Positions 13,839 to 57,941 of a DNA stretch of 64,000 nucleotides are shown piece after piece. The position numbers were made by a program, and so were the translations under genes. Under the pieces are notes generated by a model, which was given only the letters and a program-made list of their open reading frames with translations, was not told where the DNA came from and made no database searches. The stretch is from the sequence record OR493421.1, one strand, 5' to 3'. The number at the start of each line of letters is the position of its first letter. Positions within the stretch are counted from its first letter, which is position 1.

Positions 13839-14948
13839 TTAAAAGTCACCTGAGTTAACACGTTGAGTGAAGGTTTTGATAATTTCGTAAGCCTGGTCGA
13901 ACCTAACTTTGTAGTCGGAGGAAGAAATATGGAACGTTCTTCCTTCCGGGAACTGGTTAGGGAACTCCAGACTCATGAGGTTAAATAATTCAGTTGTCCG
14001 TTGTCTTTCGGGATTACTACGAAGGCCGTCATCAACCCACTCTACAGTAGGTTCGAGTACGATGACCAGATCGTAGTTTTCCTCAGCCGCTATCGCAGAG
14101 ACGATACGATTAGGTTTCCCTTCATACAACCGATGGTAGTATTCGGTAATGAACGCATTCGTATCCACAATGCAAATGCGATTAGCCGAACGCATGGCCT
14201 GGATTTCCAGTTCCTTATGGCGATAAGCGATGATTGGGTAATCGTCGCTACGGAGTGTCGATTCTGAACCACAGAGCTCAGTCTCGCAATACGTCCGACC
14301 GTACTCCTCTACCCAGGACGTATTAAACATCTTAGCCAGATTCTTGACCATGACGCTTTTACCGCAAGATTCCTGGCCGAGGATGACAATCCGTTTGGTG
14401 TAGTCCTTACGAACAATAGAAGGGAGGTATTCCCAGTTGGCGTAAAGATTCTCACGAATTTTAGTCGCACTAATGGGAACCGCTGTACGATGCGCATCAA
14501 CCACGACGTGACTGACTTCAGGAAGATGCTCCTCGTAACCTTTATCGTAATCGATTTCACTACTGAAAATGGCCACGGTCTGAGCAATCCGACGAGTGTT
14601 GTCGACTGATCCGATTCCTTTATAGTTCTTGTGCTGTTCCTCAGTGTAGATCTTCCTGAGGAGGTTGCAGTAAGCGCTCCATCCGTTGGGAAATTCCGGG
14701 ATGTCATCTTCGATGATATATTTAATATCAATGTGGTCCGAATCAGCGTAATGCTGCTGTAACCAACGAAGACGGTTAGTGAACGTCAACGCCTTCTGAT
14801 CACGAGGACATTGTTGCGCTAACCAGCGACTGTCGTGACTTAACACAACGATAACTTTCTTAGCCTGGAGGGAGGCTTGGGTGATGAGGTTGATATGACC
14901 CTGAGTGAGCGGGGCGAATTTACCAACGACGATGCCGATATCAAACAT
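13839..14948 (-). CDS. nadR: NadR-type bifunctional NMN adenylyltransferase / ribosylnicotinamide kinase (no HTH)
   Basis: GKFAPLTQGH nucleotidyltransferase motif, ISATKIR, P-loop GQESCGKS, EYGRTY, WVDDGLR. Confidence 0.95.
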   Translation of the reverse strand: MFDIGIVVGKFAPLTQGHINLITQASLQAKKVIVVLSHDSRWLAQQCPRDQKALTFTNRLRWLQQHYADSDHIDIKYIIEDDIPEFPNGWSAYCNLLRKIYTEEQHKNYKGIGSVDNTRRIAQTVAIFSSEIDYDKGYEEHLPEVSHVVVDAHRTAVPISATKIRENLYANWEYLPSIVRKDYTKRIVILGQESCGKSVMVKNLAKMFNTSWVEEYGRTYCETELCGSESTLRSDDYPIIAYRHKELEIQAMRSANRICIVDTNAFITEYYHRLYEGKPNRIVSAIAAEENYDLVIVLEPTVEWVDDGLRSNPERQRTTELFNLMSLEFPNQFPEGRTFHISSSDYKVRFDQAYEIIKTFTQRVNSGDF

Positions 14949-24379: not shown

Positions 24380-24940
24380 TTAACGGGGTGGTCCTGGAGG
24401 ACCGTTGGGATGACCACCTGGATTAGCTGGACCAGGCCCTGGGCCAGGACCTCTTCTGCTTTTGGTGTCACTATTATCGCTTTTAGAGAAAGGAACGGCA
24501 TCCTCTGCTTCAGGCGTGATAATCCTATCCAAAATATAGCACTCTGAGAACTCGATCGTTTTATCTACTTTGTTCTCTTTGTTATCCGGGGTCGCTATGA
24601 ATTTCGTGAACCTAGTGAGGTTTATGACGAGGTCGCCGTTAGTAAAACCGAGATCGATCTTATCGTACCCAGCAGTCCCACTACCCTCTATTTTTCCTTT
24701 ATCATGATAAAGGAAAAAAGGCAGTTCCATAAGAACCCCGCCGTAACGCCCATTAAGTAACGAGATTTTATTTTTGGAAATTATAAAATAATTGATGTCG
24801 GTGTTGTAAAGAGTCGGTTTAACAACCCCAGTTCCTTTGGTCTCTCCAACTTTGTTACAGACCAGGACGATATCGACTCTGGCCAAACTACTAAAACTTA
24901 ATCCGAGCAAAATGAGTAACAGGTATAATCGTTTCACCAC
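24380..24940 (-). CDS. secreted protein with Pro/Gly-rich C-terminal tail
   Basis: signal peptide ..SFSSLA; tail GPGPGPGPANPGGHPNGPPGPPR. Confidence 0.7.
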   Translation of the reverse strand: MVKRLYLLLILLGLSFSSLARVDIVLVCNKVGETKGTGVVKPTLYNTDINYFIISKNKISLLNGRYGGVLMELPFFLYHDKGKIEGSGTAGYDKIDLGFTNGDLVINLTRFTKFIATPDNKENKVDKTIEFSECYILDRIITPEAEDAVPFSKSDNSDTKSRRGPGPGPGPANPGGHPNGPPGPPR

Positions 24941-25578
24941 TCCTCCGACACCTCGATGTATTCTTCGATTTTGCCATCTTTAGCCACCCCACCACGTTTG
25001 ACTATTGATTCGATCAAAAGGTCTGTGCTAACGACGACGTCTTCTGGTTTAACTTCTTTAGCCAAATGTTTATCCATATAGGGGAGCATCAGTTTTACTA
25101 AACGTTCGTCTGTCCCGGACATGTTGTAGATGTCGCAGTGGCTAAAGAAATATCCGTAACCTATCAGCGTTTCCCGAGTGCAATCGGGGTCATTTTCAGC
25201 TTCGATGATACCATCTACCACAGTCTCTATTCTTTTATTGAACTGTCCCCCGAAGGATAACATTGTCTCCGCTTCCCATAAAGAGTCTGCGGTAGCCACA
25301 GAGATTCCATTAGGGGTATTGAAGAAACACCCAACCCATAAAGGCCAGTTCGTCTTAAGGCTGATCAAATGATCTAATAGAATTCTCCTGGCGGTATGTA
25401 CTTCCTTGCCCTGAGCGCCCAAGAAGAGCTTATTGGCGTTGACCGCCGTCGGTTTATAAAAAGACGCCCCGACAAAATAGAGCTCGTGATAGACTTTCTT
25501 AATGATTTCAGACAGACGTTTTTGTTCGAAAGTCATGCGGTTTTTTGTTGCGGGTTTCTTTTTACGTGGAGTTGCCAT
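24934..25578 (-). CDS. hypothetical protein
   Basis: 214 aa ORF, AGGAA SD. Confidence 0.8.
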   Translation of the reverse strand: MATPRKKKPATKNRMTFEQKRLSEIIKKVYHELYFVGASFYKPTAVNANKLFLGAQGKEVHTARRILLDHLISLKTNWPLWVGCFFNTPNGISVATADSLWEAETMLSFGGQFNKRIETVVDGIIEAENDPDCTRETLIGYGYFFSHCDIYNMSGTDERLVKLMLPYMDKHLAKEVKPEDVVVSTDLLIESIVKRGGVAKDGKIEEYIEVSEEW

Positions 25579-25620
25579 GGTGTTTATTCCTAAGAAATAA
25601 ATAAAAAATAAAAGAGGGTT

Positions 25621-25648
25621 TTTGTGAGGCGGAATTCCGCCTCACAAA
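25621..25648 (-). terminator. terminator hairpin
   Basis: TTTGTGAGGCGG-AATT-CCGCCTCACAAA. Confidence 0.8.
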
Positions 25649-25653
25649 TGAAA

Positions 25654-26052
25654 TCAGTAACCCTGGGGATGGAATACTGCCATAGTGGCGGCGGAAACCA
25701 CCAGCCCCATTATTACGCTGATCAGCCAGAAGACGACCCACCAACGGCTATTACCGTTGCGTTTTTGTCGTTTATAGATATACACCGGAACGAAAAGGAA
25801 CCAAAGCCAGTGAGGGACGAACGCACCTTGTGAAGCCAAGAATGCACGGTCGTGACAAAACCAGATCAGGAAGACGACAAAGGCGAAGATGAAACCGATG
25901 GCCGGGTTCCAGCCCTGGATGGCGTTCATAACCGGCTGATAGGCCCAGATGAAGATCATGAAAGTTGGGGTCATCAGCTGCGGGAAAGCGCCTTTATTAA
26001 AAGTCACTTTGCCGTTCATATCAGTAGTTGAGTTTTGAGAGATAGTAGACAT
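25654..26052 (-). CDS. inner-membrane protein
   Basis: 3-4 TM segments, DRAFL..G..PHWLWFLFVPVYIYKR; flanked by terminators. Confidence 0.8.
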   Translation of the reverse strand: MSTISQNSTTDMNGKVTFNKGAFPQLMTPTFMIFIWAYQPVMNAIQGWNPAIGFIFAFVVFLIWFCHDRAFLASQGAFVPHWLWFLFVPVYIYKRQKRNGNSRWWVVFWLISVIMGLVVSAATMAVFHPQGY

Positions 26053-26082
26053 TTGTATTTTCCTAAAAGTGAGATGGAGAAA

Positions 26083-26107
26083 AATAGGGGGAAACGTTCC
26101 CCCTATT
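26083..26107 (-). terminator. terminator hairpin ending the secreted-protein cassette
   Basis: AATAGGGGGAA-ACG-TTCCCCCTATT. Confidence 0.8.
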
Positions 26108-26126
26108 GAAGAAGTGCAGATGACGA

Positions 26127-26618
26127 TTACTGAATGCAGTTGATCACAATCTTGCCTTGGATGCGGGTTGTCCCGACCGGGAAGACCGACTGTTCCAGAT
26201 TGATTTTCGGCGCCAGTTTGATCACGCGAGAATTGCTGGCCAACGCTTTAGCTTGAGCGGCGTCAGGCCACGCGTATTCCTGATCGTTGATGTAGACCGA
26301 CGTTTTGGTCTTATCGTTTACGCTCAGCAGGTTATCGCTGAAATCAAACCGGCCGGTGTTTTGAACCAGTTTGGCTTCGGTGATCTGCCAGTTGACGTTT
26401 TGCGTGTTCGCGATCAGGGTGAAGGAAATCGCTTTGGATGTATTCGTCCCGCTTTCGTTAGCAGTAAGAATACCGCCTTCAACCGGGGTGCCGCCGGTGT
26501 AGTCGATCCCGCAGGTGATTTGGCTGTTGGTAAGAGACGCGTTCCATACCTGCTCAGAAGCGGCGTTGGCGAATGCTGTGGTAGACAGAAGAGCAATGGC
26601 GATCATGATCTTTTTCAT
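26127..26618 (-). CDS. secreted fimbrial/pilin-like subunit (putative)
   Basis: signal peptide ..TAFANA; all-beta pattern; Cys near both termini (ITCGID; KIVINCIQ); GC-rich codons. Confidence 0.55.
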   Translation of the reverse strand: MKKIMIAIALLSTTAFANAASEQVWNASLTNSQITCGIDYTGGTPVEGGILTANESGTNTSKAISFTLIANTQNVNWQITEAKLVQNTGRFDFSDNLLSVNDKTKTSVYINDQEYAWPDAAQAKALASNSRVIKLAPKINLEQSVFPVGTTRIQGKIVINCIQ

Positions 26619-26663
26619 TTAGGAATTTTCCTGTTGGGTTGGTTGGTATAACGTTAAGGTTGG

Positions 26664-27059
26664 TTATTTGAAATCTAAAGCTCGCTGCTGTTGCAAGCGA
26701 AGGTTTTCTTCGGCAGCAGCAACAGCCATTTCACGCTGTTTTAATTCAACTTCTTTCATCTTCACGCCTAAGTCATAGAGGCGCGAGCAATCCGTCTTTA
26801 CGGCAGATTCCCCGATAGGGATGGAGATGGATACGAACCCGCCTTTATCAGAATCTTCGTAACTGTAACGATTGCCGTTGTTACCGTAAGCTCCTATATT
26901 AATAGTCGACTGTGGTTTAGAAGAATCGCAACTCACATCACCGACCTGTACTCGTTCAGAAGACGAGGCGGTGTTGTTAGTCATGTAGGGTGCGTCAGCT
27001 AACGCCAGGTTAGTGAAAAACGCTGCAATGAGGATGATGAGTGTTTTATACGCGAACAT
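26664..27059 (-). CDS. secreted protein with amphipathic beta-hairpin and coiled coil (putative pore/anchor); start corrected to MFAYK
   Basis: signal peptide ..NLALA; VGDVSC, STINIGAYG, GGFVSISIPIG, DCSRLY, C-terminal heptads. Confidence 0.55.
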   Translation of the reverse strand: MFAYKTLIILIAAFFTNLALADAPYMTNNTASSSERVQVGDVSCDSSKPQSTINIGAYGNNGNRYSYEDSDKGGFVSISIPIGESAVKTDCSRLYDLGVKMKEVELKQREMAVAAAEENLRLQQQRALDFK

Positions 27060-27399
27060 CGAAGCATACCTTTCCGGTGAATTGCGAGTGGGCATCAAGA
27101 GGCCAGGAGCAGATCTTGATGTGGTCGTTTTTAATGTACTTATTACTGATGGTCATTGGGAAAATGGCTTCCATGCCAGCCATCACGTACATCTTAACCG
27201 GATTCCCCTTACTGTCCACCTTAGTGACGTCTCCGACGCTAAACGCGTAGTAGTCGTTACGATCTGATTTTAACCGCATGTTGATCAGAGTCGTTTCGTA
27301 ACCACGGATATTGACTTGGTCCACCGGTCCAAACAAGTGGGCTCGGGCCGGGGTTGTTGCCAGAAAGAACAGGATGATGAGACCTAAAATGTTTTTCAC
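27046..27399 (-). CDS. secreted Ig-like protein (putative PapD-like chaperone)
   Basis: signal peptide ..TPARA|H; beta-rich; C-terminal KICS..KVC pair. Confidence 0.5.
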   Translation of the reverse strand: MKNILGLIILFFLATTPARAHLFGPVDQVNIRGYETTLINMRLKSDRNDYYAFSVGDVTKVDSKGNPVKMYVMAGMEAIFPMTISNKYIKNDHIKICSWPLDAHSQFTGKVCFDVRV

Positions 27400-27412
27400 G
27401 GTGATACCTTTG

Positions 27413-27760
27413 TTATTCGGCTAAAAGGATGGCCTGGATTAATCGATGTTTATACAACTGCCGGGATAGCCAGCGGATGCGTTCTTTAGCTTCGGTTTGT
27501 TGAGCGATGAGACTGAGGTCGTGCCGATCCGCCAGGTAAACTGCGTTCCCTACGACATAGTCGGTACGCTGAGATTGATGCGGGCGGTCATCGTCATCAT
27601 ACCACCCACCGAAAGGATCTTGCTTTCCTTCGGTCATCCAATCCGCGTGCCGTTTATCAGCGATCTCGAGGCCGAGACGTTTCACTTCCGCTTCCAACCA
27701 AACAAACTGTTCGGTCGGTGTTTTGGTAGAGAGTAGATCGTTAAGTTCTTTATACGTCAT
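27413..27760 (-). CDS. hypothetical protein
   Basis: 115 aa ORF. Confidence 0.7.
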   Translation of the reverse strand: MTYKELNDLLSTKTPTEQFVWLEAEVKRLGLEIADKRHADWMTEGKQDPFGGWYDDDDRPHQSQRTDYVVGNAVYLADRHDLSLIAQQTEAKERIRWLSRQLYKHRLIQAILLAE

Positions 27761-27774
27761 CTTAATCTTCTCAG

Positions 27775-28233
27775 TTAAAATTGGTTACGGATGTCGCTTA
27801 TGGTTCCGCTACCTACCAGTGGAATGTTAACGATCTTTTTACCATTGGTATCGGTAACGTTAACCCAACCCACATCTTTAGCTTCGTTGAAGTAAGATTT
27901 AGCCCCGACGTAATAAAGCACATTACCATTTTTGATAATGACTTGTTCGCCGCTGGTGTTGTCGGTGTCTTCAACCTGAGCCCTTACATCGCGAACGTTG
28001 ACTTTAAGATACAGCTCGGGTTTCTGACCGATCTTACCGTAGGAGTAAAAGACATCATTGTCCCAACGGCAGACGAGAACTTCTTTATGTCCTTTTTCAG
28101 TTTGACCGTAAAAGACGATATCGCCTGGGGCGCAACGATCACCTACAACGTCCAGAGGATCCACCATCCCCATTGCGCCAGCAAATACGGAAGCGGAAAA
28201 GAAAGAGAGTAAAACTAAAACGATGCTTTTCAT
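27775..28233 (-). CDS. secreted/periplasmic protein
   Basis: signal peptide ..ASVFA; C..G..FYG.T..G.KEVLVC..YSYG..G.KPEL motif. Confidence 0.75.
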   Translation of the reverse strand: MKSIVLVLLSFFSASVFAGAMGMVDPLDVVGDRCAPGDIVFYGQTEKGHKEVLVCRWDNDVFYSYGKIGQKPELYLKVNVRDVRAQVEDTDNTSGEQVIIKNGNVLYYVGAKSYFNEAKDVGWVNVTDTNGKKIVNIPLVGSGTISDIRNQF

Positions 28234-28262
28234 TGGATGTTCCTTTCAAAAGTTAGGTTTGG

Positions 28263-28640
28263 TTATTTCTTAATAACAAAATACGGCATTCCGCCTGGGA
28301 GGACGGACCACATTTCGCGCGGTAGAACGTATTCTACTTTATCTATGGCGATTCCCAGACCCATTAGTCGTTCGATGGTTGGGTGTTCTGCCCAGTGGTT
28401 TCCCTCTTTATCCATACAAGCTTCGAGGAAACTCCACCCGCCTCCTTTCTCTTCCTGAAATTTCTCAGGAAGCTCCATGAGAAAAGAAACGATACTTTCT
28501 TTGTTTTCAATAAGTTTAGCGGGATCGAAGATAAAGACCCCTACGATGCCCACTACGACCTTTACGTCGGGATCTTCTTCTGATTCAGCCAAACAGTCAC
28601 AAAATAAATCATTTACCGCTGAAGATGATAACTTAGACAT
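28263..28640 (-). CDS. conserved phage hypothetical protein
   Basis: GGGWSFLEACMDKEG.HW..LMGLG..PREMWSVLPGGMPY highly conserved phage motif. Confidence 0.85.
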   Translation of the reverse strand: MSKLSSSAVNDLFCDCLAESEEDPDVKVVVGIVGVFIFDPAKLIENKESIVSFLMELPEKFQEEKGGGWSFLEACMDKEGNHWAEHPTIERLMGLGIAIDKVEYVLPREMWSVLPGGMPYFVIKK

Positions 28641-28666
28641 GATGTTAATTCCTAAAGAAAAACGGA

Positions 28667-29059
28667 TTATTTAAAGAAGGGATGGTCTCCGCCGGGATGT
28701 TTAACCGTTGTCTTTTTCTCATGGATATCCCAAACCAGGAGAAGGTGTTGGTGAGTGGGGGTATTGAGTAAATCAAAAGCACTGACCCGACCGGACGTTT
28801 TACCCTCGATCGCACGAACGATCAATTCGACTTCTTCACCGACTTCGGGAAATTCGTCAGCCACCAACCCCAACCAGGTGATTAGGGTTTCCGGGTTATT
28901 CCACTTTATTTCGCAACGTGGGTAAAACCAATTGGTTTCATCAAAGATAAATAGCGGAGCTAAATCTTTGAGGGCCTTATGACGCGGATAATTTTGGATT
29001 CTGTTGACGATCAGACCCAGACGAGTCACACAGCCCATTGTTAAATCGACAGTAACCAT
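28667..29059 (-). CDS. hypothetical protein (paralog of 32684-33049)
   Basis: RLG..K.L.DLAP..WL.LV..P..EE..L shared. Confidence 0.75.
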   Translation of the reverse strand: MVTVDLTMGCVTRLGLIVNRIQNYPRHKALKDLAPLFIFDETNWFYPRCEIKWNNPETLITWLGLVADEFPEVGEEVELIVRAIEGKTSGRVSAFDLLNTPTHQHLLLVWDIHEKKTTVKHPGGDHPFFK

Positions 29060-42295: not shown

Positions 42296-44305
42296 ATGAC
42301 GACTCCAACACAAAATGGTATACCCAGTAGCACCGCTATAGATGCTAGGTTTAACGCCGAGAAGTTAGATGAGATCGTTAATTCTGATAATGAAACCTAT
42401 AGTGACCGATTTGGAAATAGTAGGTTTACATTAAAGGGGTTAGCAACCCAGGTACAAGGATTTTTTGATAAAGTGCTTGGATCTGACGGAGCCGACTATA
42501 TCCCGTTAAAACAGGGAGGGAAAGTTGGCGACGCGATTGTTTCGGTTCACGTCGATTCATTTGGGGCGGATCCGTCAGGGCTAACTGACTCCACCCAAGC
42601 GGTAAAGTCCGCCCTGGCTGCAATTTCTACCGTCACCGGTAGCCCGATGAATGGTTCGGTTGATACTACTTACGCCTCTCTAGTTTTCGGAAACGGGAAA
42701 TATGTAGTTGGCGATATCCCGCTATATTCCGGAATTTGGTATAAGGGGCAGGGCGCGTTTGAGACAATACTCATACCTAAAGCTGGATCAGAATTTGTCT
42801 TCACAACCGTGGGTACCAAGCCTTATGAAACCTACAGTATTTCATACAGGTTGTTCAGAACTATTATATCGGATCTTCATATAGGCTGCGGTTATCAGAA
42901 TGTGCTAAGTGGCGTCACTATCCCTACCGGTGTAGGAGGGATAAGGATTTATCATGCGTCTTACGTCACCATTGAAAACGTATATCTGCGTCATTTAGAC
43001 GGGATGGGTTTTGATTTTGGATCTCTGTGGGACTCCGAAACATTTGGGTTAAGGGCGATGTACGTGGGGAACTGCCGTGATTCGTCTAACCCGGCCTGGG
43101 CTTTCAGACTGTGGGCGGCTGACGCGGCAACGGACGGTTCTAACGCGAATAGATTTTGGTCAACTCACATTGAGGGATGTCCCGCGGACATATGCGTCGA
43201 CTTAAGATCCAGACACAATTTCTTTTTCGGCGGGAAAATAGAAAAAATCCGTTACAACGATGCAAATGCTTTCTGTTCTAGTGTTATAAGGGGTGCCGAC
43301 AGCCTTGTTTTTTGCGATTTTGAACTTACTTCAGTAAACGTCATTCACTTTATGTTTGAAATTGTGGGTACGACAACGGTAATCGATACGAGCGCGGACG
43401 ATGTTTCTGATCCAAACTGCGATCATTCTAGAGGCGTCGTGTTCATGAACCCACACATAATAGACAGTAATGCGTTGTCGGGGGACTATTTTAAAACCAA
43501 ATCTGATAGAGGTAGGATTAAGATTATCGGGGGGTACGCCAGGCACGCCAGGTATTTAATAAGTGGATCTGACGTAAAAATTTCTGATATGGATTTGACC
43601 CAATGCGGACCCACCATTGGCCTATTACAGGGGAATACGGTGTTGCAGGGCGTCACCATAGGTAGAAGCCGTGTCCCTACATCCGGGAGCTTCTCGGTAT
43701 TTACAGTTACTGGTAACTCCAACAAAATACGTTTTTGTGAGTTCGGAACCGTTTACGGATCAGCCACTAATAATGGGTCGTGGATAACTGTGAACTCTTC
43801 AACCGAATTGCAAATAAACGATCTTGAGTTTAGCGGTAGTATGCAAAACGGAATCAGCGGTTCTAACGCAACTCAGCAAAGAAAATTCAGAAATGTGAGA
43901 CTTGCTTCCGGCGCTACGTACGGTTCGCTTATTAATGGCGGTTACCCTTACGACGGACTTCCAACCAAAATCATTACTGATACAGGATACGCCGTTTCTA
44001 ACAGAATAACTGTTCCTGTTGACGGGACTGTTGCATCGCCAGCAACAGTCGGAGGAGCTTCGTCTATTCTGGTTAGAGTGGAAAATGCGTCATCTGTGGC
44101 GATCGCCTCAGGTAGAATATTTGGTGATGCGTCATTCGCGACCTTGAAAATAGAATCCGACATCCAGGGTAATTTATCTGTTACTGGAGTGGGGGTTAGT
44201 GGAGATGGTAAAATTTATTTGTCTCAATCCAATGGCGCGCTTTCCATAACTAATAGGACATCCGGTACCATTACAGTGTACATCCTCACCATAAACGCAA
44301 AATAA
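42296..44305 (+). CDS. tailspike/depolymerase 1 (inverted)
   Basis: shared anchor PT..PS..D..FNAEKLD..VNSD..DRFG; VDSFGADPSG..DST beta-helix entry; only plus-strand gene supported. Confidence 0.88.
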   Translation: MTTPTQNGIPSSTAIDARFNAEKLDEIVNSDNETYSDRFGNSRFTLKGLATQVQGFFDKVLGSDGADYIPLKQGGKVGDAIVSVHVDSFGADPSGLTDSTQAVKSALAAISTVTGSPMNGSVDTTYASLVFGNGKYVVGDIPLYSGIWYKGQGAFETILIPKAGSEFVFTTVGTKPYETYSISYRLFRTIISDLHIGCGYQNVLSGVTIPTGVGGIRIYHASYVTIENVYLRHLDGMGFDFGSLWDSETFGLRAMYVGNCRDSSNPAWAFRLWAADAATDGSNANRFWSTHIEGCPADICVDLRSRHNFFFGGKIEKIRYNDANAFCSSVIRGADSLVFCDFELTSVNVIHFMFEIVGTTTVIDTSADDVSDPNCDHSRGVVFMNPHIIDSNALSGDYFKTKSDRGRIKIIGGYARHARYLISGSDVKISDMDLTQCGPTIGLLQGNTVLQGVTIGRSRVPTSGSFSVFTVTGNSNKIRFCEFGTVYGSATNNGSWITVNSSTELQINDLEFSGSMQNGISGSNATQQRKFRNVRLASGATYGSLINGGYPYDGLPTKIITDTGYAVSNRITVPVDGTVASPATVGGASSILVRVENASSVAIASGRIFGDASFATLKIESDIQGNLSVTGVGVSGDGKIYLSQSNGALSITNRTSGTITVYILTINAK

Positions 44306-44363
44306 TAAACGACGCCTTATCAGTAGGGAAATAGTGGGAGGTGTGTATTTTTAACTACTCCCG

Positions 44364-44415
44364 CCCCACCCCAATTTTAACCTGAAGTGAGGAAAGGCAG
44401 ATGACATCTTTTTAA
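44364..44415 (+). pseudogene. relic leader and first codons (MTSF*) of a lost tailspike gene
   Basis: CCCCACC-CCAATTTTAACCTGA...ATGACATC matches the leader of tailspike 51522-53300 (minus strand CCCCACCGCCAATTTTAACCTGA...ATGACATC); SD GAGGAAAGG. Confidence 0.55.
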
Positions 44416-44446
44416 AATTATCGGGATGTTTTTGAGATAGCGTGAT

Positions 44447-44482
44447 TATACTCTCCCTGACTATATAGTCAGGGAGAGTATA
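44447..44482. terminator. bidirectional terminator between convergent genes
   Basis: TATACTCTCCCTGACT-ATAT-AGTCAGGGAGAGTATA. Confidence 0.8.
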
Positions 44483-44492
44483 GCGGCAGCTT

Positions 44493-45290
44493 CTATTTAA
44501 ATGCCAAACTATCGAAGAACATATTCATCATTTCTAATTTCTTTTGATTCATCATTTTAATGAATAAATTTTGTTCTTTCTTAACGAATTGCTCTTCCCA
44601 ACTCCCCAGATTATATTTCTTCTCACCCACTACAATGACTTTTTCGGTTCCATTGATATAACCTACTGCACTTTCTCCATTTAATCCGATAGAGAAATAA
44701 TCGCCGCTAAATTGAGGGGCGTCGATAATAACGGACGAGAATCTTTTATTCGTTATAGTTTGCACCCCGAAGAAAAGTCTGGAGTGTACAACTCGGCAAT
44801 CCCTCAAAGTCGTTCTTCCGGTCAAATCTCTGTTGACGATATAACTGTGATCAATAAAGTTATTGGCCAAATTACAGCCAATAAGATCACTGCACTTAAT
44901 AGCGATACCTTCCCCAATTTCCCCGTTCGACGTAATCGAAACATCCTGGAGTTTCGAGTCAACAATGGTGCACTGAGCTAAATTTGAAATATTGGTGCGA
45001 TGAACCCGGGAGTTATTTAAATGAAGTTTTTTGGAGTAGCTTGTTAAACCGTTTAAGAAGATTACGCCAGTTAATGATGTTTCGTCACTAATATGTATCA
45101 GGTTGGGTCCAGTGAATAGGATCTCAGTTAACCACCCCACTACATTCTCGAATCTCTGAGAAGTCATCTTAGGGTTGTCTAAGACCAGTTTAAGTGAATC
45201 ATCGCCATCAGTGAAATTAATATCCTCTTTTTTTATTACCAGATTAAAGTGTTCAATCAATTCTTCTTTAGTCACTTTCATTTTATTCAC
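44493..45290 (-). CDS. hypothetical protein with beta-helix-like repeats
   Basis: repeating I/V/L-x-N/D-S/C pattern in the central part. Confidence 0.6.
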   Translation of the reverse strand: MNKMKVTKEELIEHFNLVIKKEDINFTDGDDSLKLVLDNPKMTSQRFENVVGWLTEILFTGPNLIHISDETSLTGVIFLNGLTSYSKKLHLNNSRVHRTNISNLAQCTIVDSKLQDVSITSNGEIGEGIAIKCSDLIGCNLANNFIDHSYIVNRDLTGRTTLRDCRVVHSRLFFGVQTITNKRFSSVIIDAPQFSGDYFSIGLNGESAVGYINGTEKVIVVGEKKYNLGSWEEQFVKKEQNLFIKMMNQKKLEMMNMFFDSLAFK

Positions 45291-45389
45291 CTTTATTTTA
45301 CAGTTTAAAATGAGAACGTGTTATTTCAAACCGGTGTTTAAAACAACGTATTCTCGTTTATTACCAATAAAACATTACGGTCGTTAAAA

Positions 45390-45857
45390 TTAACCGAGCT
45401 GCATGGTGTATTCGACGGGTTTAAATTTAAGACTCTTGTAAAGCTTCTGAGCGGCTTTATTAGACCTGTAAACGTTTAACTGTACGATGTATCCATTTGA
45501 TCTTGCCGACACGATAGCAGCGATTAGGTTGCGTTTAGCAAGCCCTTTATGGCGATACTCAGGTAACGTATAAACGTTAAAGATTTTCGCTATTTTGAGA
45601 TGATGTTCTAAAGCGTAAACAACGGATAGAATCGACACTATTTTCTTCCCATCAAAAACGAGGAAGTAGTGTTCGTTTAAACGGTTGTGTTTAAAATCTT
45701 CCAGATTGAACGAATAGGGGTTGATGTCTTTAGCGATACTTTTCTTAGCGAAGTGATTAATGTCAGTCATCGCCAAATTTAACATTGTGATGACTTCTCC
45801 CTCTAAACCCAATCCAATTATTTCTTTTCCGTAGTAATTATCGTACATGAGGTTCAT
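45390..45857 (-). CDS. GNAT N-acetyltransferase
   Basis: NVYTLPEYRHKGLA, LNVYRSNKAAQKLYKSLKF. Confidence 0.9.
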   Translation of the reverse strand: MNLMYDNYYGKEIIGLGLEGEVITMLNLAMTDINHFAKKSIAKDINPYSFNLEDFKHNRLNEHYFLVFDGKKIVSILSVVYALEHHLKIAKIFNVYTLPEYRHKGLAKRNLIAAIVSARSNGYIVQLNVYRSNKAAQKLYKSLKFKPVEYTMQLG

Positions 45858-45905
45858 GATTACAGTCTCTTATGAAAAGTTCATAAATGGCCGTGGCGCG
45901 TTTAA

Positions 45906-45942
45906 AATAACTCCTATTCCCGATAAGGGAATAGGAGTTATT
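45906..45942 (-). terminator. repeated terminator hairpin (variant copy 3, loop reversed)
   Basis: CTCCTATTCCC-GATAA-GGGAATAGGAG, reverse complement of copies 1 and 2 with one compensatory pair change. Confidence 0.8.
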
Positions 45943-45947
45943 AGAAC

Positions 45948-46721
45948 TTACTTATAAAGTTTCAGGGCTTTGGAGCAAATGTCTGACCGCACACTATCAG
46001 CCGCATTGAAACGATAAACCGGGAATCCATTTTCAGGATCTCGTTCGATACGCTCCAGCAGATCTTCCAGACCGGATTTAACTCCTTTAGGAAGATCGCA
46101 CTGGGTAAGGTCGCCGTTGATGATTACCGTAGTGTTCTCACCCATACGAGTGATGAACATTTTCATCTGCATAACTGTAACGTTTTGCGCTTCGTCAAGA
46201 ATCACTACTGAGTCAGAAAAAGTACGACCCCTCATAAAAGCAAAAGGAGCGACTTCGACTTTCTCCACGCCAGGCTTCATGCAATAGTTAAGCATTCCAC
46301 CGCCCAGGCGTTTCAGTAAGATGTCGTAGACCGGCCGGAAGTAAGGCGCGAATTTTTCATTAACATCTCCGGGGAGAAAACCCAGATCTTCATCGGCCTG
46401 TAAGACCGGCCGTGTAACGATGATCTTTTCCACGTCTTTAGCCAGCAGACGTTCTGCGGCGTAACAAGTCGGGAGGAACGTTTTACCGCTACCCGCTTCA
46501 CCAATACCGATGACGACATCGTGGGCGTGTAACCCATCCCAATATTTTTGCTGCATTGGGGTTTTCGGCTCAATCTTACTCCGATCAGCTTTTGCAAGAG
46601 GTAGATTTACTTCACTGAAATTGTTGTCCACCAGTTTCAGTTGGCTACTTTGGGACTTATCTTGACGTCTTGCTTCGCGACGAGCGTCGCGGTTAGCACG
46701 CTTAACACTACGATTATGCAT
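45948..46721 (-). CDS. phoH: PhoH-family ATPase
   Basis: PKT..Q, GEAGSGKT, IVTRP, LGFLPGD, PFAFMRGRTF, ILDEAQN, GDLTQCD. Confidence 0.95.
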   Translation of the reverse strand: MHNRSVKRANRDARREARRQDKSQSSQLKLVDNNFSEVNLPLAKADRSKIEPKTPMQQKYWDGLHAHDVVIGIGEAGSGKTFLPTCYAAERLLAKDVEKIIVTRPVLQADEDLGFLPGDVNEKFAPYFRPVYDILLKRLGGGMLNYCMKPGVEKVEVAPFAFMRGRTFSDSVVILDEAQNVTVMQMKMFITRMGENTTVIINGDLTQCDLPKGVKSGLEDLLERIERDPENGFPVYRFNAADSVRSDICSKALKLYK

Positions 46722-46792
46722 ATAAGTACCTGCTGTGTGTGGGTTAACTCCTTACCTTCATAGCATTAGGGCTGGGTAGAAAATAACTAGAA

Positions 46793-47026
46793 TTATGTCC
46801 CGGAGTAAGTTGTTAAAGCTTTGAACGACACACCCTGATTAACTGTGTTGATGTATTCCGCTACCGCGCCGGCGCCCATCGCATCCATTCGCTGAGTCCT
46901 CTCACCCAAACCAAATGACCCGAATTGAGGGAAACCCCACTTAGTAACGGTTGTAAAATTACAGCCTTGAGTAATGAACCCCATATCGGCAGTGTAATCA
47001 AAAGATCGGACCTTCACATTAACCAA
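46793..47026 (-). CDS. uncertain short ORF / possible tail-protein fragment
   Basis: 77 aa, TTG start, no clear SD; frame open a little further upstream without ATG. Confidence 0.35.
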   Translation of the reverse strand: MVNVKVRSFDYTADMGFITQGCNFTTVTKWGFPQFGSFGLGERTQRMDAMGAGAVAEYINTVNQGVSFKALTTYSGT

Positions 47027-47103
47027 TTTAGCGTACGCTCTGGAGGCAAACTCTACGGTACGTTAGTTAAAAAAATACCCCCAATTCTACTGACTATAAG
47101 GAT

Positions 47104-47385
47104 TTACTGCTGTTCTTCTTCTGCCTGAGTTTCTTCTGAAGCCCGTTCTGCGCGTTTGATATCTTCGATGTCTTTGTTCACCGCCTCGTCTTCTTCTTGC
47201 CGAGCGGTATCTTTCTCCATACCTTCGGCTTTCTCGATACGACCCAACTCGATAGATACACGCTGCAATTCGTTATTAGCGATAATCGATTCGAGCTCGG
47301 CGATGTATCGTTTGGCTTCGGCGCCTTCTAAACGCAGGTGGCAAATTTGAGCTTGAAGTTGAAGAATTTGTTTTTCGGCTGACAT
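47104..47385 (-). CDS. acidic coiled-coil protein, possible tailspike assembly chaperone
   Basis: heptad N-half, acidic tail; last gene after tailspike run; AAGGA SD. Confidence 0.6.
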   Translation of the reverse strand: MSAEKQILQLQAQICHLRLEGAEAKRYIAELESIIANNELQRVSIELGRIEKAEGMEKDTARQEEDEAVNKDIEDIKRAERASEETQAEEEQQ

Positions 47386-47430
47386 GATATTTCCTTAGAT
47401 GGGTTTATGGTCCATATATTGGTTAAATCG

Positions 47431-48948
47431 TTAAGGAACAATTATCCAGGTCGATCCATCGTACCAAACCTCTACTTTAGTTGGGGTGGTGACAGTTAAA
47501 GGGTACGTAGCGTAACCACTTACGTTGACTTCCTGGGCGTTGGCGGTGATATAGTATGTTCCAGCCCTAAGTATCTTCAATTCGTAAAAATGACCTGAAG
47601 ACATATTACTTATAGCCGGCATTGTCAGAGTTATCCCGGCTGCATTTATCAGATAACAAGGAATGAGCGCATTCAGCGTTGTATTCGTCGTAAGCACACT
47701 GTACTTAGTCATATTGCGCAGACGTCTACCGTATCCATCGTAAATCATCGTCGAGTTAACATACGACATATCTGTCATATCGGAAGATTTGCTGAACACC
47801 ATCGAATAAGTGGGCATTCCAGAAAATCTTATTCCGACTGGCGCAGACCCGGTCGATACGTAGTTATTATACGTGGCGCCGGACGCATAGAAGTTCATTC
47901 TGTTATTAGTTGAACGGACACCGTACAACCATGTTTTAGCTGAAGTGCTCGCAGGGCGAACCAGTACGCCAGCCACACCATCATAGAGGCTTTGTTGGAG
48001 CAGCGGAATATCGATACCGTTTAGCGAAGCTCCAGACTTATTGATCACCGCCCCAAATTCGCATATTACGGCATTATCGGCGGCAGAGTTGCTGTTAATG
48101 ATAGTGTTGGCGTTGATAGCCCAAACTTTATTAATCAGGTTGACGTTGAACCCCACGCCCGAAGTCGGTGTTAGAGTGGCCCCATCAGCTGTCGCCCATT
48201 CATCAACTGTCACCACACCAGTGGTTTTGTTTATACTGGTAATCAACCCCCAACATTTAGTGGGGTGGAGTGTCTGAATGACGTCACCAACTAGGGCGTT
48301 GGTCAGGAAAGAAGAATACACCGATGGGCTGACCGTAACAGTCGTGGCGGTATATGACGCAGTATCAACTGTTTCCCAGTCTTCCAGTGCTGGAGCTAAG
48401 GCGTCGGCAAATAATGTTACGCCATCATTCAACCCATATGCAGCTACGCCCCTGGCGTTCTGCGCACCCGTAACCTGAGCATTGAAGACTCCAGTATCTC
48501 CTGATGAAGCTCGGCCACCTCGTAAACTCAATGCGGTCGCGTGCCTGCGAATACTACGGAATTTCCTACCTATGGTGATCGAACCATTCAAAAGAAGATC
48601 GGTATCGCGAAGAGCGCCCTGCTCTGTAAAAATAGCAAGGTCGTTAGTCGAAGAATACCCCAGATAAGGACGCGGAAGACCCGAGTCACTCATTGTCCTC
48701 ATACGGGAAAGAACATCTCCCACATTAGAGGTTCTATATCCGACATTCTCCGCCCCGTTTTCAGTGGAAAACGACGTCATCCAATTAGAAACGTTTTGTC
48801 TAATCCCGTTTAACGTCGTTCTGCTGATCCCAAGACGGTCTGTAAAAGACGTGTTGTTAGAGTTGATAAACTCGTCAAATTTTTCTGCGTTGAATAATCG
48901 GTCTTGAACCGAGTTACTCGGTATATTGTTATTAGTTGGGGTAGTCAT
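47431..48948 (-). CDS. tail fibre/spike 2
   Basis: shared anchor; beta-rich body without typical pectate-lyase entry motif; ends EVWYDGSTWII. Confidence 0.85.
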   Translation of the reverse strand: MTTPTNNNIPSNSVQDRLFNAEKFDEFINSNNTSFTDRLGISRTTLNGIRQNVSNWMTSFSTENGAENVGYRTSNVGDVLSRMRTMSDSGLPRPYLGYSSTNDLAIFTEQGALRDTDLLLNGSITIGRKFRSIRRHATALSLRGGRASSGDTGVFNAQVTGAQNARGVAAYGLNDGVTLFADALAPALEDWETVDTASYTATTVTVSPSVYSSFLTNALVGDVIQTLHPTKCWGLITSINKTTGVVTVDEWATADGATLTPTSGVGFNVNLINKVWAINANTIINSNSAADNAVICEFGAVINKSGASLNGIDIPLLQQSLYDGVAGVLVRPASTSAKTWLYGVRSTNNRMNFYASGATYNNYVSTGSAPVGIRFSGMPTYSMVFSKSSDMTDMSYVNSTMIYDGYGRRLRNMTKYSVLTTNTTLNALIPCYLINAAGITLTMPAISNMSSGHFYELKILRAGTYYITANAQEVNVSGYATYPLTVTTPTKVEVWYDGSTWIIVP

Positions 48949-48966
48949 AATTCACCTTGAATGAAC

Positions 48967-48988
48967 GAGAGGGAGTTAACCCCCTCTC
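48967..48988 (-). terminator. hairpin between tailspike genes
   Basis: GAGAGGG.GTTAAC.CCCTCTC. Confidence 0.65.
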
Positions 48989-49001
48989 TTAAGCTGATAG
49001 G

Positions 49002-51395
49002 TTAGCTAAATGTTGTTTTAACCCAGGCGTTCCAGGCACCGGTATTTGTGTTCCAGGTTCTCCTGTAAACATTATTCCCTACCCCGTTAAAGGTCTGGAA
49101 GGCCGTTGCTCTTGAATTAGGGTGCCCGGTATAAAAGTCGACAGCACCGTACGACTCCGGCCATGTCGAGTCGTTATAAATCGACGACCTCACAGTGCAA
49201 TAAGGAGTAAACGACGTTGGGACGGATGAGGACGAGATAATGGAAACCATATTGTTAACGACAGTCCCTCCGACCATCTGCCAGTTACCATCCTTATTAT
49301 ACCGCCATCCTTGCACCTCACCATAAGGAGAACCCTTCGTCCCAACAAACATTCCGTCGGCCCAGGCTATGTTACTGTATCCCGTCATAGTTGATGCCGA
49401 TGGTTTACCGTAAGTGGTTGAATCCCAAACCGTGGAGAATTCGTCAAACCTCCAATTCCCACTTAAATCAACGGAGACTAATCCTAAGTACCTGTCTCTA
49501 AAACGAACACCCTTTACTTTGGGGAATAGCGCGAAGTTAGTAGCGGATCTGACAACTAATTCTTCAGAATAAAGTTCTGGTGCCGTAGATCCGGTAACCA
49601 AGAAGAAGTTAGATACGTATGCTGTATCCGCCCCGTTTCTTTTAAAGGAAACATTCTTAGCGTAAACTTTGGAAGGTGTTGGGTGTGTCACCCCCCAGTT
49701 TATTAATAACTGAGCCTGCGCGATGGTATCGGTGGATGCGCTTGGGGGATTCTGTATGGCCCCATTGATCGAAACGACCGGGATTTGACGGTCACCTACA
49801 ATCGAAATAGAGTTGTAAACGTCGTCTGGGACAGAACCATTCACAGTCACCCCGTTGATATTAAGAGTGGATATTTCAGTATATCCTATTGCTATTAAGG
49901 TTCGGGCGTTTCCGGACGGCCAACATTTGATATTCGAAAGAGTCAGTGACTTTATTGTACTTGGGTAAGTATTGGTGTAAGAAGATGGCTGGATGACGTT
50001 ACCAACCCTAATCGTGTTATAAAGATGTTGATTTCCGGTACTCCCATTTACCCTGACATCAATGTCGGATATGTTAATGCTACCCATTTCGGAATAGTAA
50101 TCGGTTAAAGGGGAGTTGCCGAAAGAAACTTCGCTACCCACCCTAACTGCTGAGTATTGGGTGAATCCTTTCACGCCAGATATTGATACTTTCTCGACCC
50201 CATACCCGCCTTGAGAGTTAACCACCACCCCGTTCCAAGTGTAGACTTTGGTAACACCATCCAAATCACTTATCTTATACCACGGATTGATGTTTTTTAT
50301 GGTGACGTTTTTAATCATGAGGTAATCGAGATTGGTGATCGCGTCGCTATCGGCTTCAGTCCCCCCTTCTATCCACAGGCAGCCGGCTACGACGGCGACC
50401 ATGTCGTCGGTGGTGAACCCATAAATATCTTCAATAAGGATATTTTCAGAACAGCCGGTCACACCGTCGCCTCTAGATCCACCTTGGGGAAAAGCGTTGG
50501 CGATGTGTGAGTTAAATCTCAGATTTTTAGCGTGAAAGTTAATGTTCCCGCCATGATTTACGCTATGTCCTCTAAAATCATGCACGTACATATCTTCTAT
50601 CTTGGCGTTCTTGAACAGCGAAACGATAAATCCGTGCGAGAGGTCCTTAAATGTCCCGGTTGCGTTTAATGTCTCTTCCCCCTGCCCGCTCCAATTTCCA
50701 TCAAATTCACCGCCACGCCAAGAAAAGCTGTTCTCCCTATTACCTACAAACACGAACATGTTATTACGAACGAGATTATCTAATTTAAAAACTACCCCCG
50801 GATCGCAATAAACGATAACGTTTTTAGTTAAAAGGATTTTCACTTTTTTGTTTATCAGGTACGTTCCTTTGGAAAACTTAATATGTTCAAAGGAACTCTT
50901 GAACATATTAATGATTGCTCCTGAATCTTGTGTCACGCCGTCACCTACAGCACCGAACATCTGTGGGGTGACGAAGTTATCATTTCCAATCCTTTCCCAG
51001 TAATAGTTGATCCCTTGAGCTACTGTACCGCCATCATCTAACTTAGTGCCGATGTGACCAACGAAGATACCTCCACCCGTAGTTCCATTTTCATAATAGG
51101 ACTTGAGGAAAATACGCTGACCTTCGGTTCTCACTGGGGTCGATCTCAGCGTATCAAAAGATTTGACTCCGCCAATTAATTTGAACCCGTCGGGAGAGCC
51201 CAACAGATTCGTGAAAGTATCCTGGAAGCCATTAGCGAGTTCCTGAACCCCTTTCATTGTAATACGTTTTTTACCAAAACGATCCGTATAAGTCAGATCG
51301 TCGGAATTCATCACTCGGTCGAATTGTTCCGAGTTAAACTTGAGGTCCACCGCAGCATTGCTGGGGATGTCACCCGTAGTTGGAGTTGTAGCCAC
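49002..51395 (-). CDS. tailspike/depolymerase 3
   Basis: GTG start after AAGGAG; anchor; TSP1/gp66-like N domain (LRS...GQRIFLKSYY..GGG..DDGG); TPQMFGAVGDG beta-helix; pyocin-knob-like C-term YRRTW..WNAW. Confidence 0.9.
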   Translation of the reverse strand: MATTPTTGDIPSNAAVDLKFNSEQFDRVMNSDDLTYTDRFGKKRITMKGVQELANGFQDTFTNLLGSPDGFKLIGGVKSFDTLRSTPVRTEGQRIFLKSYYENGTTGGGIFVGHIGTKLDDGGTVAQGINYYWERIGNDNFVTPQMFGAVGDGVTQDSGAIINMFKSSFEHIKFSKGTYLINKKVKILLTKNVIVYCDPGVVFKLDNLVRNNMFVFVGNRENSFSWRGGEFDGNWSGQGEETLNATGTFKDLSHGFIVSLFKNAKIEDMYVHDFRGHSVNHGGNINFHAKNLRFNSHIANAFPQGGSRGDGVTGCSENILIEDIYGFTTDDMVAVVAGCLWIEGGTEADSDAITNLDYLMIKNVTIKNINPWYKISDLDGVTKVYTWNGVVVNSQGGYGVEKVSISGVKGFTQYSAVRVGSEVSFGNSPLTDYYSEMGSINISDIDVRVNGSTGNQHLYNTIRVGNVIQPSSYTNTYPSTIKSLTLSNIKCWPSGNARTLIAIGYTEISTLNINGVTVNGSVPDDVYNSISIVGDRQIPVVSINGAIQNPPSASTDTIAQAQLLINWGVTHPTPSKVYAKNVSFKRNGADTAYVSNFFLVTGSTAPELYSEELVVRSATNFALFPKVKGVRFRDRYLGLVSVDLSGNWRFDEFSTVWDSTTYGKPSASTMTGYSNIAWADGMFVGTKGSPYGEVQGWRYNKDGNWQMVGGTVVNNMVSIISSSSVPTSFTPYCTVRSSIYNDSTWPESYGAVDFYTGHPNSRATAFQTFNGVGNNVYRRTWNTNTGAWNAWVKTTFS

Positions 51396-51457
51396 GAGGT
51401 TACTCCTTTAAAAGAATGTAGTATAAAAGACTTGCGCAAGTCTACTGAATTTGGTTC

Positions 51458-51467
51458 AGCATAAAAT
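51458..51467 (-). promoter_or_regulatory. ATTTTATGCT element upstream of tailspike 3
   Basis: identical 10-mer at 59992-60001. Confidence 0.45.
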
Positions 51468-51480
51468 CGAAGAAGAGTAA

Positions 51481-51512
51481 TAGCTGCTGTTCCCCGGTGG
51501 GAACAGCAGCTA
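51481..51512 (-). terminator. terminator hairpin
   Basis: TAGCTGCTGTTCCC-CGGT-GGGAACAGCAGCTA. Confidence 0.8.
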
Positions 51513-51521
51513 TTAGTTAAC

Positions 51522-53300: not shown

Positions 53301-53321
53301 TATCTAATTCCCATCAGGTTA

Positions 53322-53365
53322 AAATTGGCGGTGGGGATGTTATCCCCATTGTCCACCGCCAATTT
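53322..53365 (-). terminator. long hairpin between tailspike genes
   Basis: AAATTGGCGGTGG...CCACCGCCAATTT with inner GGGGAT-GTT-ATCCCC. Confidence 0.75.
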
Positions 53366-53382
53366 GACTATTTATGAGGTTT

Positions 53383-55542: not shown

Positions 55543-55555
55543 TAAAAACTCCTGT

Positions 55556-55579
55556 TCCCCCTGAGGTTAGTCAGGGGGA
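55556..55579 (-). terminator. hairpin between tailspike genes
   Basis: TCCCCCTGA-GGTTAG-TCAGGGGGA. Confidence 0.75.
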
Positions 55580-55585
55580 CGATTG

Positions 55586-55780
55586 TTATCTGGTAAAGGC
55601 TAATGGGGTGCTGGGTCCTTCAGTTAGCCAGTAAACTGGAAGTTTGATGCTTATTGTTCCAGTGATCCCACTGAGTATCAGAGAGGGCCGTACAACAATT
55701 ACATTGCTCGGGTCGGAATAGGTGTGTTGTTTGGTGACTCGCACCCCAACACACTTAGACGTCGTTAACGACGTTCTCAT
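55586..55780 (-). CDS. uncertain short ORF downstream of tailspike 6
   Basis: 64 aa beta-rich, weak SD; may be a hitchhiking fragment. Confidence 0.3.
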   Translation of the reverse strand: MRTSLTTSKCVGVRVTKQHTYSDPSNVIVVRPSLILSGITGTISIKLPVYWLTEGPSTPLAFTR

Positions 55781-55853
55781 CTACGATAGCCTTTACGGAC
55801 CATAGTCGATGTGAATAGTTGCATCCGCCATTATCATTTCCCGAATGTACACG

Positions 55854-57725: not shown

Positions 57726-57767
57726 TGCTATTCCTCGAGTCAGGAAGGTTGAAATATCGTTAGGCAT

Positions 57768-57801
57768 AAAATCCAACCGCCTATAAGGGCGGTTGGATTT
57801 T
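57768..57801 (-). terminator. terminator hairpin overlapping an ATTTTATGC element (57764-57772)
   Basis: AAAATCCAACCGCC-TATAAG-GGCGGTTGGATTTT. Confidence 0.8.
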
Positions 57802-57941
57802 AATTAACCAATGAACAAACATTTTCCGGTAAATTCAACACCCCGGTACCCGGGTAGATGATTCCTTTCCATCTTTGCTACTAGGCATAACGACAGTGGA
57901 CTAGTTAAAGACACCCTGTCGGTTACTCAAATCACAACGAG

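Follow-up and report, generated by a model that had tools for sequence, protein, structure and literature searches.

Klebsiella jumbo phage YC1 (OR493421.1; 252.5-kb genome) encodes, within the 64,000-nucleotide stretch analysed here (the window, to which all positions refer unless another locus is named), a compact cassette of three consecutive genes for small exported proteins, here called A, B, and C. Gene A (27046–27399, minus strand) begins with a GTG start codon and encodes 117 aa, gene B (26664–27059, minus strand) encodes 131 aa counted from the ATG at 27059, and gene C (26127–26618, minus strand) encodes 163 aa. All three open reading frames (ORFs) agree with coding sequences in the GenBank record of YC1, in which every gene of the region is annotated as hypothetical; a longer, TTG-started frame for B that reaches 27098 receives no support from its relatives. 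Window positions 25000–29000 share 95–97.5% identity with the phages Miami (genus Miamivirus), KPN8, BUCTxx100, and VB_ZK_P1, and the Miami annotation marks ribosome-binding sites and terminators and names one neighbour a putative secreted protein.

The start of B lies inside the end of A, with an overlap of 14 nt (27046–27059, minus strand). The −14 arrangement is found in five lineages, the remaining spacings being −17, −1, +1, and +10, and this overlap suggests translational coupling of A and B. Unlike the coupled pair, C has its own ribosome-binding site and start region. An intrinsic terminator with an 11-bp GC-rich stem, a 3-nt loop, and a U-run closes the cassette (26076–26107, minus strand); its predicted fold of −16.1 kcal/mol is more stable than expected (z = −4.2), and none of 200 shuffled sequences was as stable. 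A hairpin with a U-tract follows C in six of ten lineages, where the elements are non-homologous. All three proteins start as Sec signal peptides do, with positive charge at the N-terminus, then a hydrophobic core and a cleavage site of the AxA type, and each contains exactly two cysteines (A 97/112, B 44/91, and C 36/161). An initial annotation, made from the DNA sequence alone, had described three consecutive minus-strand genes with Sec signal peptides and paired cysteines, an overlap of 14 nt between the first two, and a strong terminator at the end, and the ORFs, the YC1 coding sequences, the protein sequences, and the folding of the terminator confirm that description.

Distribution of the cassette

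Membership of the trio was defined by three adjacent genes on the same strand in the order A-B-C, each encoding a signal peptide and one cysteine pair; the trio so defined is present in the window, L003–L008, L013, L014, and L018, and homology was established by alignment everywhere save L018, for which a match to B and the gene sizes were used. At least 11 lineages, whose flanking sequences are unrelated, carry A-B-C in this order and on one strand, and wherever any member could be traced to DNA, the other two adjoin it. The possibility raised earlier, that the three genes do not co-occur elsewhere, is thereby removed. Carriers come from five jumbo-phage groups and beyond; they include Miami-like phages (the window, L003, and L016), FBKp24-like phages of ~300 kb (L006), Eowyn (L008), a Munch/7t3-like contig of 362 kb (L018), and the 147-kb Erwinia phage pEp_SNUABM_01 (L007), where the cassette sits inside a tRNA array, along with a phage-like Klebsiella pneumoniae contig (L004), a plasmid-like Providencia rettgeri contig (L005), and three short metagenomic contigs (L013, L014, and L015, the last truncated at B). 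Between lineages, C and B each retain 45–60% identity. All-against-all clustering of neighbouring ORFs from 11 loci revealed no fourth gene common to the cassette loci and no shared large gene beside the cassette.

In total, 24 phage records carry the cassette, and no plasmid record carries C. A scan of 185,579 species genomes with a B profile gave a single match, on a 592-bp scaffold (L009; NZ_JANLCJ010000583.1) in an assembly of the actinobacterium Herbiconiux daphne. This scaffold encodes a B homolog at 51% identity and is probably contaminating phage DNA. Among the Miami-like phages, BUCTxx100 (OR529409.1) is labelled a Stenotrophomonas phage, which looks odd: over this region it is 97% identical to Klebsiella Miami-like phages, with an identical C and near-identical A and B.

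A-B-C is a real, conserved, and mobile cassette, and it constitutes an uncharacterised and rare family. Searches with A, B, and C returned no sequence match in Pfam, NCBIfam, PADLOC, or PDB, and no paper describing the family was found in the literature. Assignment to a known anti-phage defence system was rejected, as no PADLOC model matched A, B, C, or three neighbouring proteins at E-values up to 0.1.

Properties of the three proteins

The AlphaFold2 model of C (predicted local distance difference test, pLDDT, 85.5; predicted template modelling score, pTM, 0.74) is a pilin-type beta-sandwich with six main strands, in which the chain stops two residues past the last strand. The first strand contains Cys36, and Cys161 falls where the last strand finishes. 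When the model was compared with PDB using Foldseek, the top match was CfaB, the major pilin of CFA/I (E-values 5e-4 to 6e-3, probability 0.98–1.0, template modelling (TM) scores 0.37–0.45), and other neighbours were the PapG pilin domain, TasA, CsuA/B, ZP modules, Saf, Fim, and Pap subunits, and CanA. This list consists almost entirely of strand-exchange polymers. Since the corresponding list for A (see below) contains generic immunoglobulin (Ig) domains, the pilin signal of C is not merely that of any beta-sandwich. The pilin-like sandwich with cysteines near both termini that had been proposed for C is thus borne out by its fold and by the Cys36/Cys161 pair. Within the family, which comprises 18 homolog clusters by protein search, the first strand is invariant, and the N-terminal segment preceding it and the last strand are conserved above average. 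C also contains an invariant glycine 14 residues before the C-terminus, which we take to be a hallmark of classical pilins, and it is without their penultimate aromatic residue. Neither sequence nor profile searches with C returned a PDB match, and none of 19 C-family members hit a fimbrial Pfam family at E-values up to 1. In BFVD, the closest viral neighbour by structure is a 157-aa protein (E-value 2.8e-7, TM-scores 0.55–0.57), which may, as a provisional assignment, belong to the Vibrio-phage set described below.

The codon composition of C is equally distinctive. Its GC content (0.518) and its GC content at third codon positions (GC3, 0.671) are both the highest among the 90 window ORFs of at least 100 aa (mean GC3 0.462, standard deviation 0.051), in agreement with the strongly GC-rich codons noted at the outset. 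In the Klebsiella jumbo phages with 43–45% GC, C alone of the trio has raised GC3 (z = 2.0–3.7), as observed at four loci of three genera (the window, L003, L006, and L008), while in backgrounds of 57%, 36%, and 38% GC the whole cassette matches its surroundings. Recent horizontal transfer is an unlikely source of this GC3, given that A and B are unbiased and that the bias recurs in three Klebsiella jumbo-phage genera; a bias that is both recurrent and confined to C argues instead for selection for high expression of C. Together with the coupling of A and B, the codon bias suggests that C is the bulk, abundant component of the trio, as far as can be read from sequence. A 164-aa ORF on the plus strand (26157–26651) lies antisense to C, and six loci have such a frame opposite C; the simplest explanation is that it is no gene but a shadow ORF arising from the GC3-rich codons of C.

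Protein B has a conserved mature N-terminus, followed by a Cys44–Cys91 clamp around an amphipathic beta-hairpin (residues ~52–83) and a C-terminal coiled-coil helix of ~40 residues. Insertions and deletions in the helix among relatives are exactly +7 or −7 residues, that is, heptads, and because of this heptad size the helix is a genuine coiled coil. Conservation peaks in the two strands, where the share of the top residue reaches 0.89 and 0.84, and in both, residues on the polar face are invariant whereas those on the aliphatic face vary. The initial annotation had pictured two amphipathic strands plus a long coiled coil; the strands and the coiled coil stand, but at ~40 residues the helix is not long. 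The B family comprises 19 clusters by protein search, and B is the only member of the trio to match any PHROG (phrog_37374). In three of eight lineages, B residues ~44–122, spanning the strand-loop-strand-helix unit, align with positions 33–108 of the Pfam OEP profile (PF02321), as a single partial stretch with sub-threshold scores (18.5–18.6 versus 22 bits), and profile searches of PDB with B returned no TolC-type chain. With OEP scores below the gathering cut-off, no PDB support, and no tandem OEP repeats, a TolC-type channel was rejected as an identity for B.

The mature part of A (~97 aa) is a complete seven-strand Ig/FnIII-like beta-sandwich in an AlphaFold2 model built with search-derived relatives (pLDDT 82.1, pTM 0.71; all five models at 80.7 or above), with the Cys97–Cys112 pair near the C-terminus. 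Foldseek against PDB placed it among generic Ig/FnIII-like domains; CsgC came at rank 25, and the top 50 contain no PapD-type chaperone. In addition, no Pfam PapD_N or PapD_C match was found in 11 A-family members, and alignment of A with a PapD-type chaperone in hhalign gave a probability of 0.6%. The small Ig/PapD-like protein proposed earlier is therefore Ig-like, but a PapD-like character is not seen, because no PapD chaperone is among the top 50 matches; for a single ~97-aa domain that is negative by Foldseek, Pfam, and hhalign alike, the identity of a PapD-type chaperone is not supported. A histidine-brace copper protein (CopC- or LPMO-like) was likewise rejected, as the mature N-terminal histidine is not invariant: the AxA site is followed by His in the window, by Phe in P0041, P0043, P0044, and FBKp24, and by Gln in P0040. 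Of the three proteins, A evolves fastest (23–59% identity to relatives), and its family grew from two clusters by protein search to nine after an exhaustive HMMER scan of 1.84 billion representatives.

Related Vibrio phage genes and genomic surroundings

B has homologs in Vibrio phages (tblastn E-value 6e-4; hhalign probability 97.4%, E-value 1e-11), and B-like proteins from five loci were recovered with hmmsearch E-values from 1e-11 to 3e-14. The gene order there is C-like, A-like, B-like, and a small lipoprotein gene. The C-like proteins are 149–156 aa long with cysteines near both ends, and the A-like proteins are 132–135 aa long with a C-terminal cysteine pair, and neither shows detectable sequence homology to C or A. 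The initial annotation had mentioned similar triplets in marine phage and Vibrio genomes; this holds by homology for B, but for the other two partners by architecture only. The C-like partner is present in 179 Vibrio phage records. The set lies directly downstream of two large fibre-like proteins without signal peptides, and in T5-like Vibrio phages holin and endolysin genes follow it within ~1 kb. The lipoprotein (61–67 aa, phrog_16916) is a fourth exported component, and its gene shares ~50 nt with the 3′ end of the B-like gene in all five loci (L022 3287–3472, L023 3182–3385, L025 4041–4232, L026 4101–4286, and L027 4104–4307), and no ORF with a lipobox was found within 1.5 kb of the cassette on the same strand in ten Enterobacterales lineages. 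Upstream of the set in Vibrio phage Bennett (L024 9425–14753; gp145–gp147) are a DUF7265 protein and two proteins of ~820 aa. The 1496-position phrog_10818 aligns through its C-terminal half with Bennett gp147 and the K249 homolog of gp147, and the Bennett fibre gene may have been split in two.

The surroundings of the cassette in the window are rich in envelope proteins. A 152-aa secreted protein with two cysteines (27775–28233, minus strand), a 186-aa secreted protein that ends in a Gly/Pro-rich tail (24380–24940, minus strand), and a 132-aa protein with at least two transmembrane segments and an unusually high GC3 of 0.62 (25654–26052, minus strand) are encoded nearby, and these three neighbours are not conserved with the cassette beyond Miami-like phages. 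Miami contains an extra 1-kb gene, CPT_Miami_133 (L001 4079–5222; 340 aa, with a recorded similarity to a Vibrio phage protein), which is flanked by annotated terminators and sits exactly between the cassette terminator and the next gene, a place that corresponds to window positions ~26053–26126. As this gene is absent from YC1, the 3′ end of the cassette is an insertion hot spot. Further away, window positions 42296–59918 encode six large ORFs (592–797 aa), several with N-terminal matches to tail-fibre, tailspike, or exopolysaccharide (EPS) depolymerase PHROGs and with short N-terminal modules in common (phrog_13362 and phrog_3257), an arrangement that resembles the multi-depolymerase fibre sets usual in Klebsiella jumbo phages. 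The window also encodes a 369-aa protein (13839–14948, minus strand) resembling nicotinamide-nucleotide adenylyltransferases (phrog_3462, E-value 2e-126), an auxiliary function in nicotinamide adenine dinucleotide (NAD) salvage.

Interpretation and known systems

Pilus assembly machinery was sought with tblastn, using as probes the usher and the PapD-type chaperone of the Providencia contig, which carries a chaperone-usher operon 3–7 kb from the cassette; the usher probe detects ushers at 22–26% identity. The probes matched 22–23 records of the phage collection (23 for the usher), and no usher homolog and no PapD homolog was found in any cassette-bearing phage genome. As far as tblastn detects, the earlier statement that a classical usher is missing holds genome-wide. 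Kinship between the Providencia operon and the cassette was rejected, since profile comparisons of the subunits and the chaperone found them unrelated to the cassette proteins.

Our preferred reading, to which we assign a probability of roughly 0.4, is that A-B-C is an usher-independent envelope module in which C self-associates, A and B handle or anchor it, and the envelope of the infected cell is altered. The three exported proteins, whose genes lie in accessory (moron-type) phage regions, would form a self-contained unit that acts in the cell envelope. C would be its abundant building block, and copies of C may complement one another's strands to form a polymer or coat outside the cytoplasm. 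A and B, presumably made in coupled and lower amounts, would hold, nucleate, or anchor C in place of a chaperone-usher machine, with B pictured as a disulfide-clamped beta-hairpin on a coiled-coil stalk. The purpose could be an altered surface or periplasm of the infected cell, for example one that excludes other phages or prevents re-adsorption of progeny.

Several observations weigh against this envelope module. The TM-scores of C to pilins are modest (0.37–0.45), and no link between C and any pilin family was found at the sequence level in Pfam or in sequence and profile searches of PDB. The N-terminal segment of C (residues 21–40) is modelled at pLDDT 80–85, so it may pack on its own domain and close the fold, and the alternating hydrophobic pattern of C is short, covering three positions only. 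The hydrophobic faces of the B strands are only three to four residues long, the TolC-type likeness of B is sub-threshold and without PDB support, and no route across the outer membrane has been demonstrated for the cassette proteins. Finally, A evolves faster than C in the sequence comparisons, which is unexpected for a dedicated chaperone.

The initial annotation had gone as far as an undescribed usher-less fibre system. This is partly supported: the conserved cassette, the pilin-like fold of C, its codon usage, and the lack of a detected usher or PapD agree with it, a PapD-like A is not shown, and the outer-membrane barrel proposed for B finds no more than the sub-threshold OEP hits. A bolder form of the idea would be an undescribed usher-free phage fibre or coat, with C strand-complemented, A a periplasmic guard, and B an oligomeric anchor or outer-membrane conduit, possibly joined by the lipoprotein in Vibrio phages; in this form we regard it as doubtful. 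If it were true, a phage-made structure on the cell surface would alter contact with other phages or with the phage's own progeny.

The envelope module has to be weighed above all against a non-polymeric device for exclusion or receptor masking, in which A-B-C would form a small periplasmic or outer-membrane complex that blocks a host receptor, porin, or uptake channel, and in which the pilin-like fold of C would be a simple Ig-type binding module, as could be imagined beside T5 Llp, phi80 Cor, and T4 Sp. We consider this possible, if on the unlikely side. Exclusion morons are typically placed near receptor-binding functions, T5 llp lying beside the receptor-binding gene and cor downstream of tail-fibre genes. 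Comparable positions are seen in five Vibrio phage groups, where the related set comes right after tail-fibre-like genes that are without signal peptides and before the lipoprotein gene, and in Erwinia phage pEp_SNUABM_01, where a tail-fibre gene lies just upstream of the cassette; in the Klebsiella jumbo phages, however, the cassette is away from fibre genes, with the fibre array ~15 kb off. The rapid evolution of A (23–59% identity) is as expected for contact with a variable host target, and pilin TM-scores of only ~0.4 for C would suit a mere binding module, but the enrichment of strand-exchange polymers among the fold matches of C and its strong codon bias, which points to bulk expression, speak for the polymer. 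No similarity to a known exclusion protein or defence model was found.

Three further readings receive less weight. An orphan pilin-like subunit that enters host chaperone-usher pathways and caps, replaces, or jams fimbriae, with A and B as adaptors, would exploit hosts (Klebsiella, Erwinia, and Providencia) that are rich in usher systems. It would fit the pilin-type fold of C, the invariant glycine 14 residues from its end (if we are right to take this as a hallmark), and the Providencia operon 3–7 kb from the cassette. We nevertheless judge it improbable, for the profiles of the cassette proteins are unrelated to the subunits and chaperone of that operon, the penultimate aromatic of classical pilins is missing in C, there is no sequence link to fimbrial Pfam families, and the constant retention of A and B would go unexplained. 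Less probable still is a lysis-related device, with B as an i-spanin-like protein that spans the periplasm and the Vibrio lipoprotein as o-spanin, or with the trio sensing or controlling the timing of lysis. The ~50-nt overlap of the lipoprotein gene with the B-like 3′ end, the holin and endolysin genes within ~1 kb in T5-like Vibrio phages, and the combination in B of an N-terminal hydrophobic segment with a C-terminal coiled coil point that way. In pVp-1, however, the spanin pair is located at 46911–47283 and 47279–47573 (PMC6139136, supplement file 5), ~7 kb from the trio at 53859–55165, and none of ten Enterobacterales lineages has a lipoprotein gene within 1.5 kb; these two facts weaken the spanin reading of B. 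B moreover has an AxA cleavage site and a beta-rich domain, and the plasmid-like Providencia contig carries the cassette without lysis genes. Addition of A, B, and C to virions as decoration or extra fibres, which the initial annotation had also entertained, is highly improbable. Fibre-gene proximity in some lineages and the fibre-subunit-like fold of C are all that favours it, and tailed-phage virions assemble in the cytoplasm, whereas all three proteins are Sec-exported with periplasmic disulfides. Our literature search found no virion proteomics for cassette-bearing phages, and the phiKp24 paper contains no mention of cassette gene products or mass spectrometry.

If C does polymerise as the envelope module supposes, the cassette would represent a minimal three-protein pilin-type structure in a Gram-negative envelope with neither an usher nor a PapD-type chaperone, and a pilin-type route encoded by lytic phages rather than by the bacterium. 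It would then bear on the minimum machinery for donor-strand fibres and on what large phages do to the surface of the infected cell. Even if A-B-C proved to be a masking complex that does not polymerise, it would remain a family with clear boundaries that is easily tracked.

Among known systems, the cassette appears nearest in fold, judging from the model of C, to the class 5 chaperone-usher pilins. The best structural matches of C are chains of CfaB from CFA/I, which with CS1 represents this class, and the two proteins are alike in mature size (~147 aa for CfaB and ~144 aa for C), in Sec export, and in a chain that ends at the last strand of an Ig-type fold. They differ in that C has no sequence similarity to CfaB, matches it at TM 0.37–0.45, and features a cysteine pair joining the first and last strands, and the cassette is without the two-domain chaperone, the ~850-aa usher, and the tip adhesin. 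As neither an usher nor a two-domain chaperone was detected, and no fimbrial sequence family matched, the cassette falls outside the chaperone-usher systems. Subunits of classical and archaic pili (the PapG pilin domain, PapA/E, FimF/G, SafA, and CsuA/B) are also among the neighbours of C, but these matches are weak (E-values 0.09–0.5), and A, one complete Ig domain, lacks PapD chaperones among its 50 best matches. Compared with TolC-type OEP proteins, B is about one-fourth as large and contains a single hairpin and a single helix.

The exclusion morons T5 Llp, phi80 Cor, and T4 Sp/Imm are likewise small exported proteins that lytic phages encode in accessory regions, and the Vibrio-phage and Erwinia-phage sets adjoin tail-fibre genes. 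These morons are single proteins, often lipoproteins, whereas the cassette always comprises three proteins, one of which has a pilin fold, and no similarity between them and the cassette proteins was found. In the curli system (the CsgA/B fibre, periplasmic CsgC, and CsgE/F/G for export), small proteins that leave the cytoplasm through Sec produce an extracellular fibre with no usher involved; the cassette is likewise a small Sec-exported set, but its fibre is only proposed. The periplasmic CsgC, which is Ig-like and about as small as A, appears among the neighbours of A (rank 25, E-value 0.018, TM-scores 0.42/0.49), in a match no better than those to many generic Ig domains. C differs from curli in being without amyloid-type repeats and in having a pilin-type rather than a beta-helix fold, and a CsgG-like lipoprotein channel is absent from the Enterobacterales cassette. 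The TasA/TapA system of Bacillus belongs to a Gram-positive envelope with no outer membrane, has no sequence relation to the cassette, and uses other accessory proteins; TasA is nevertheless among the structural neighbours of C (E-value 0.11, TM-score 0.42), and the system provides a precedent for strand-complemented fibres that are built with small accessory proteins and without an usher.

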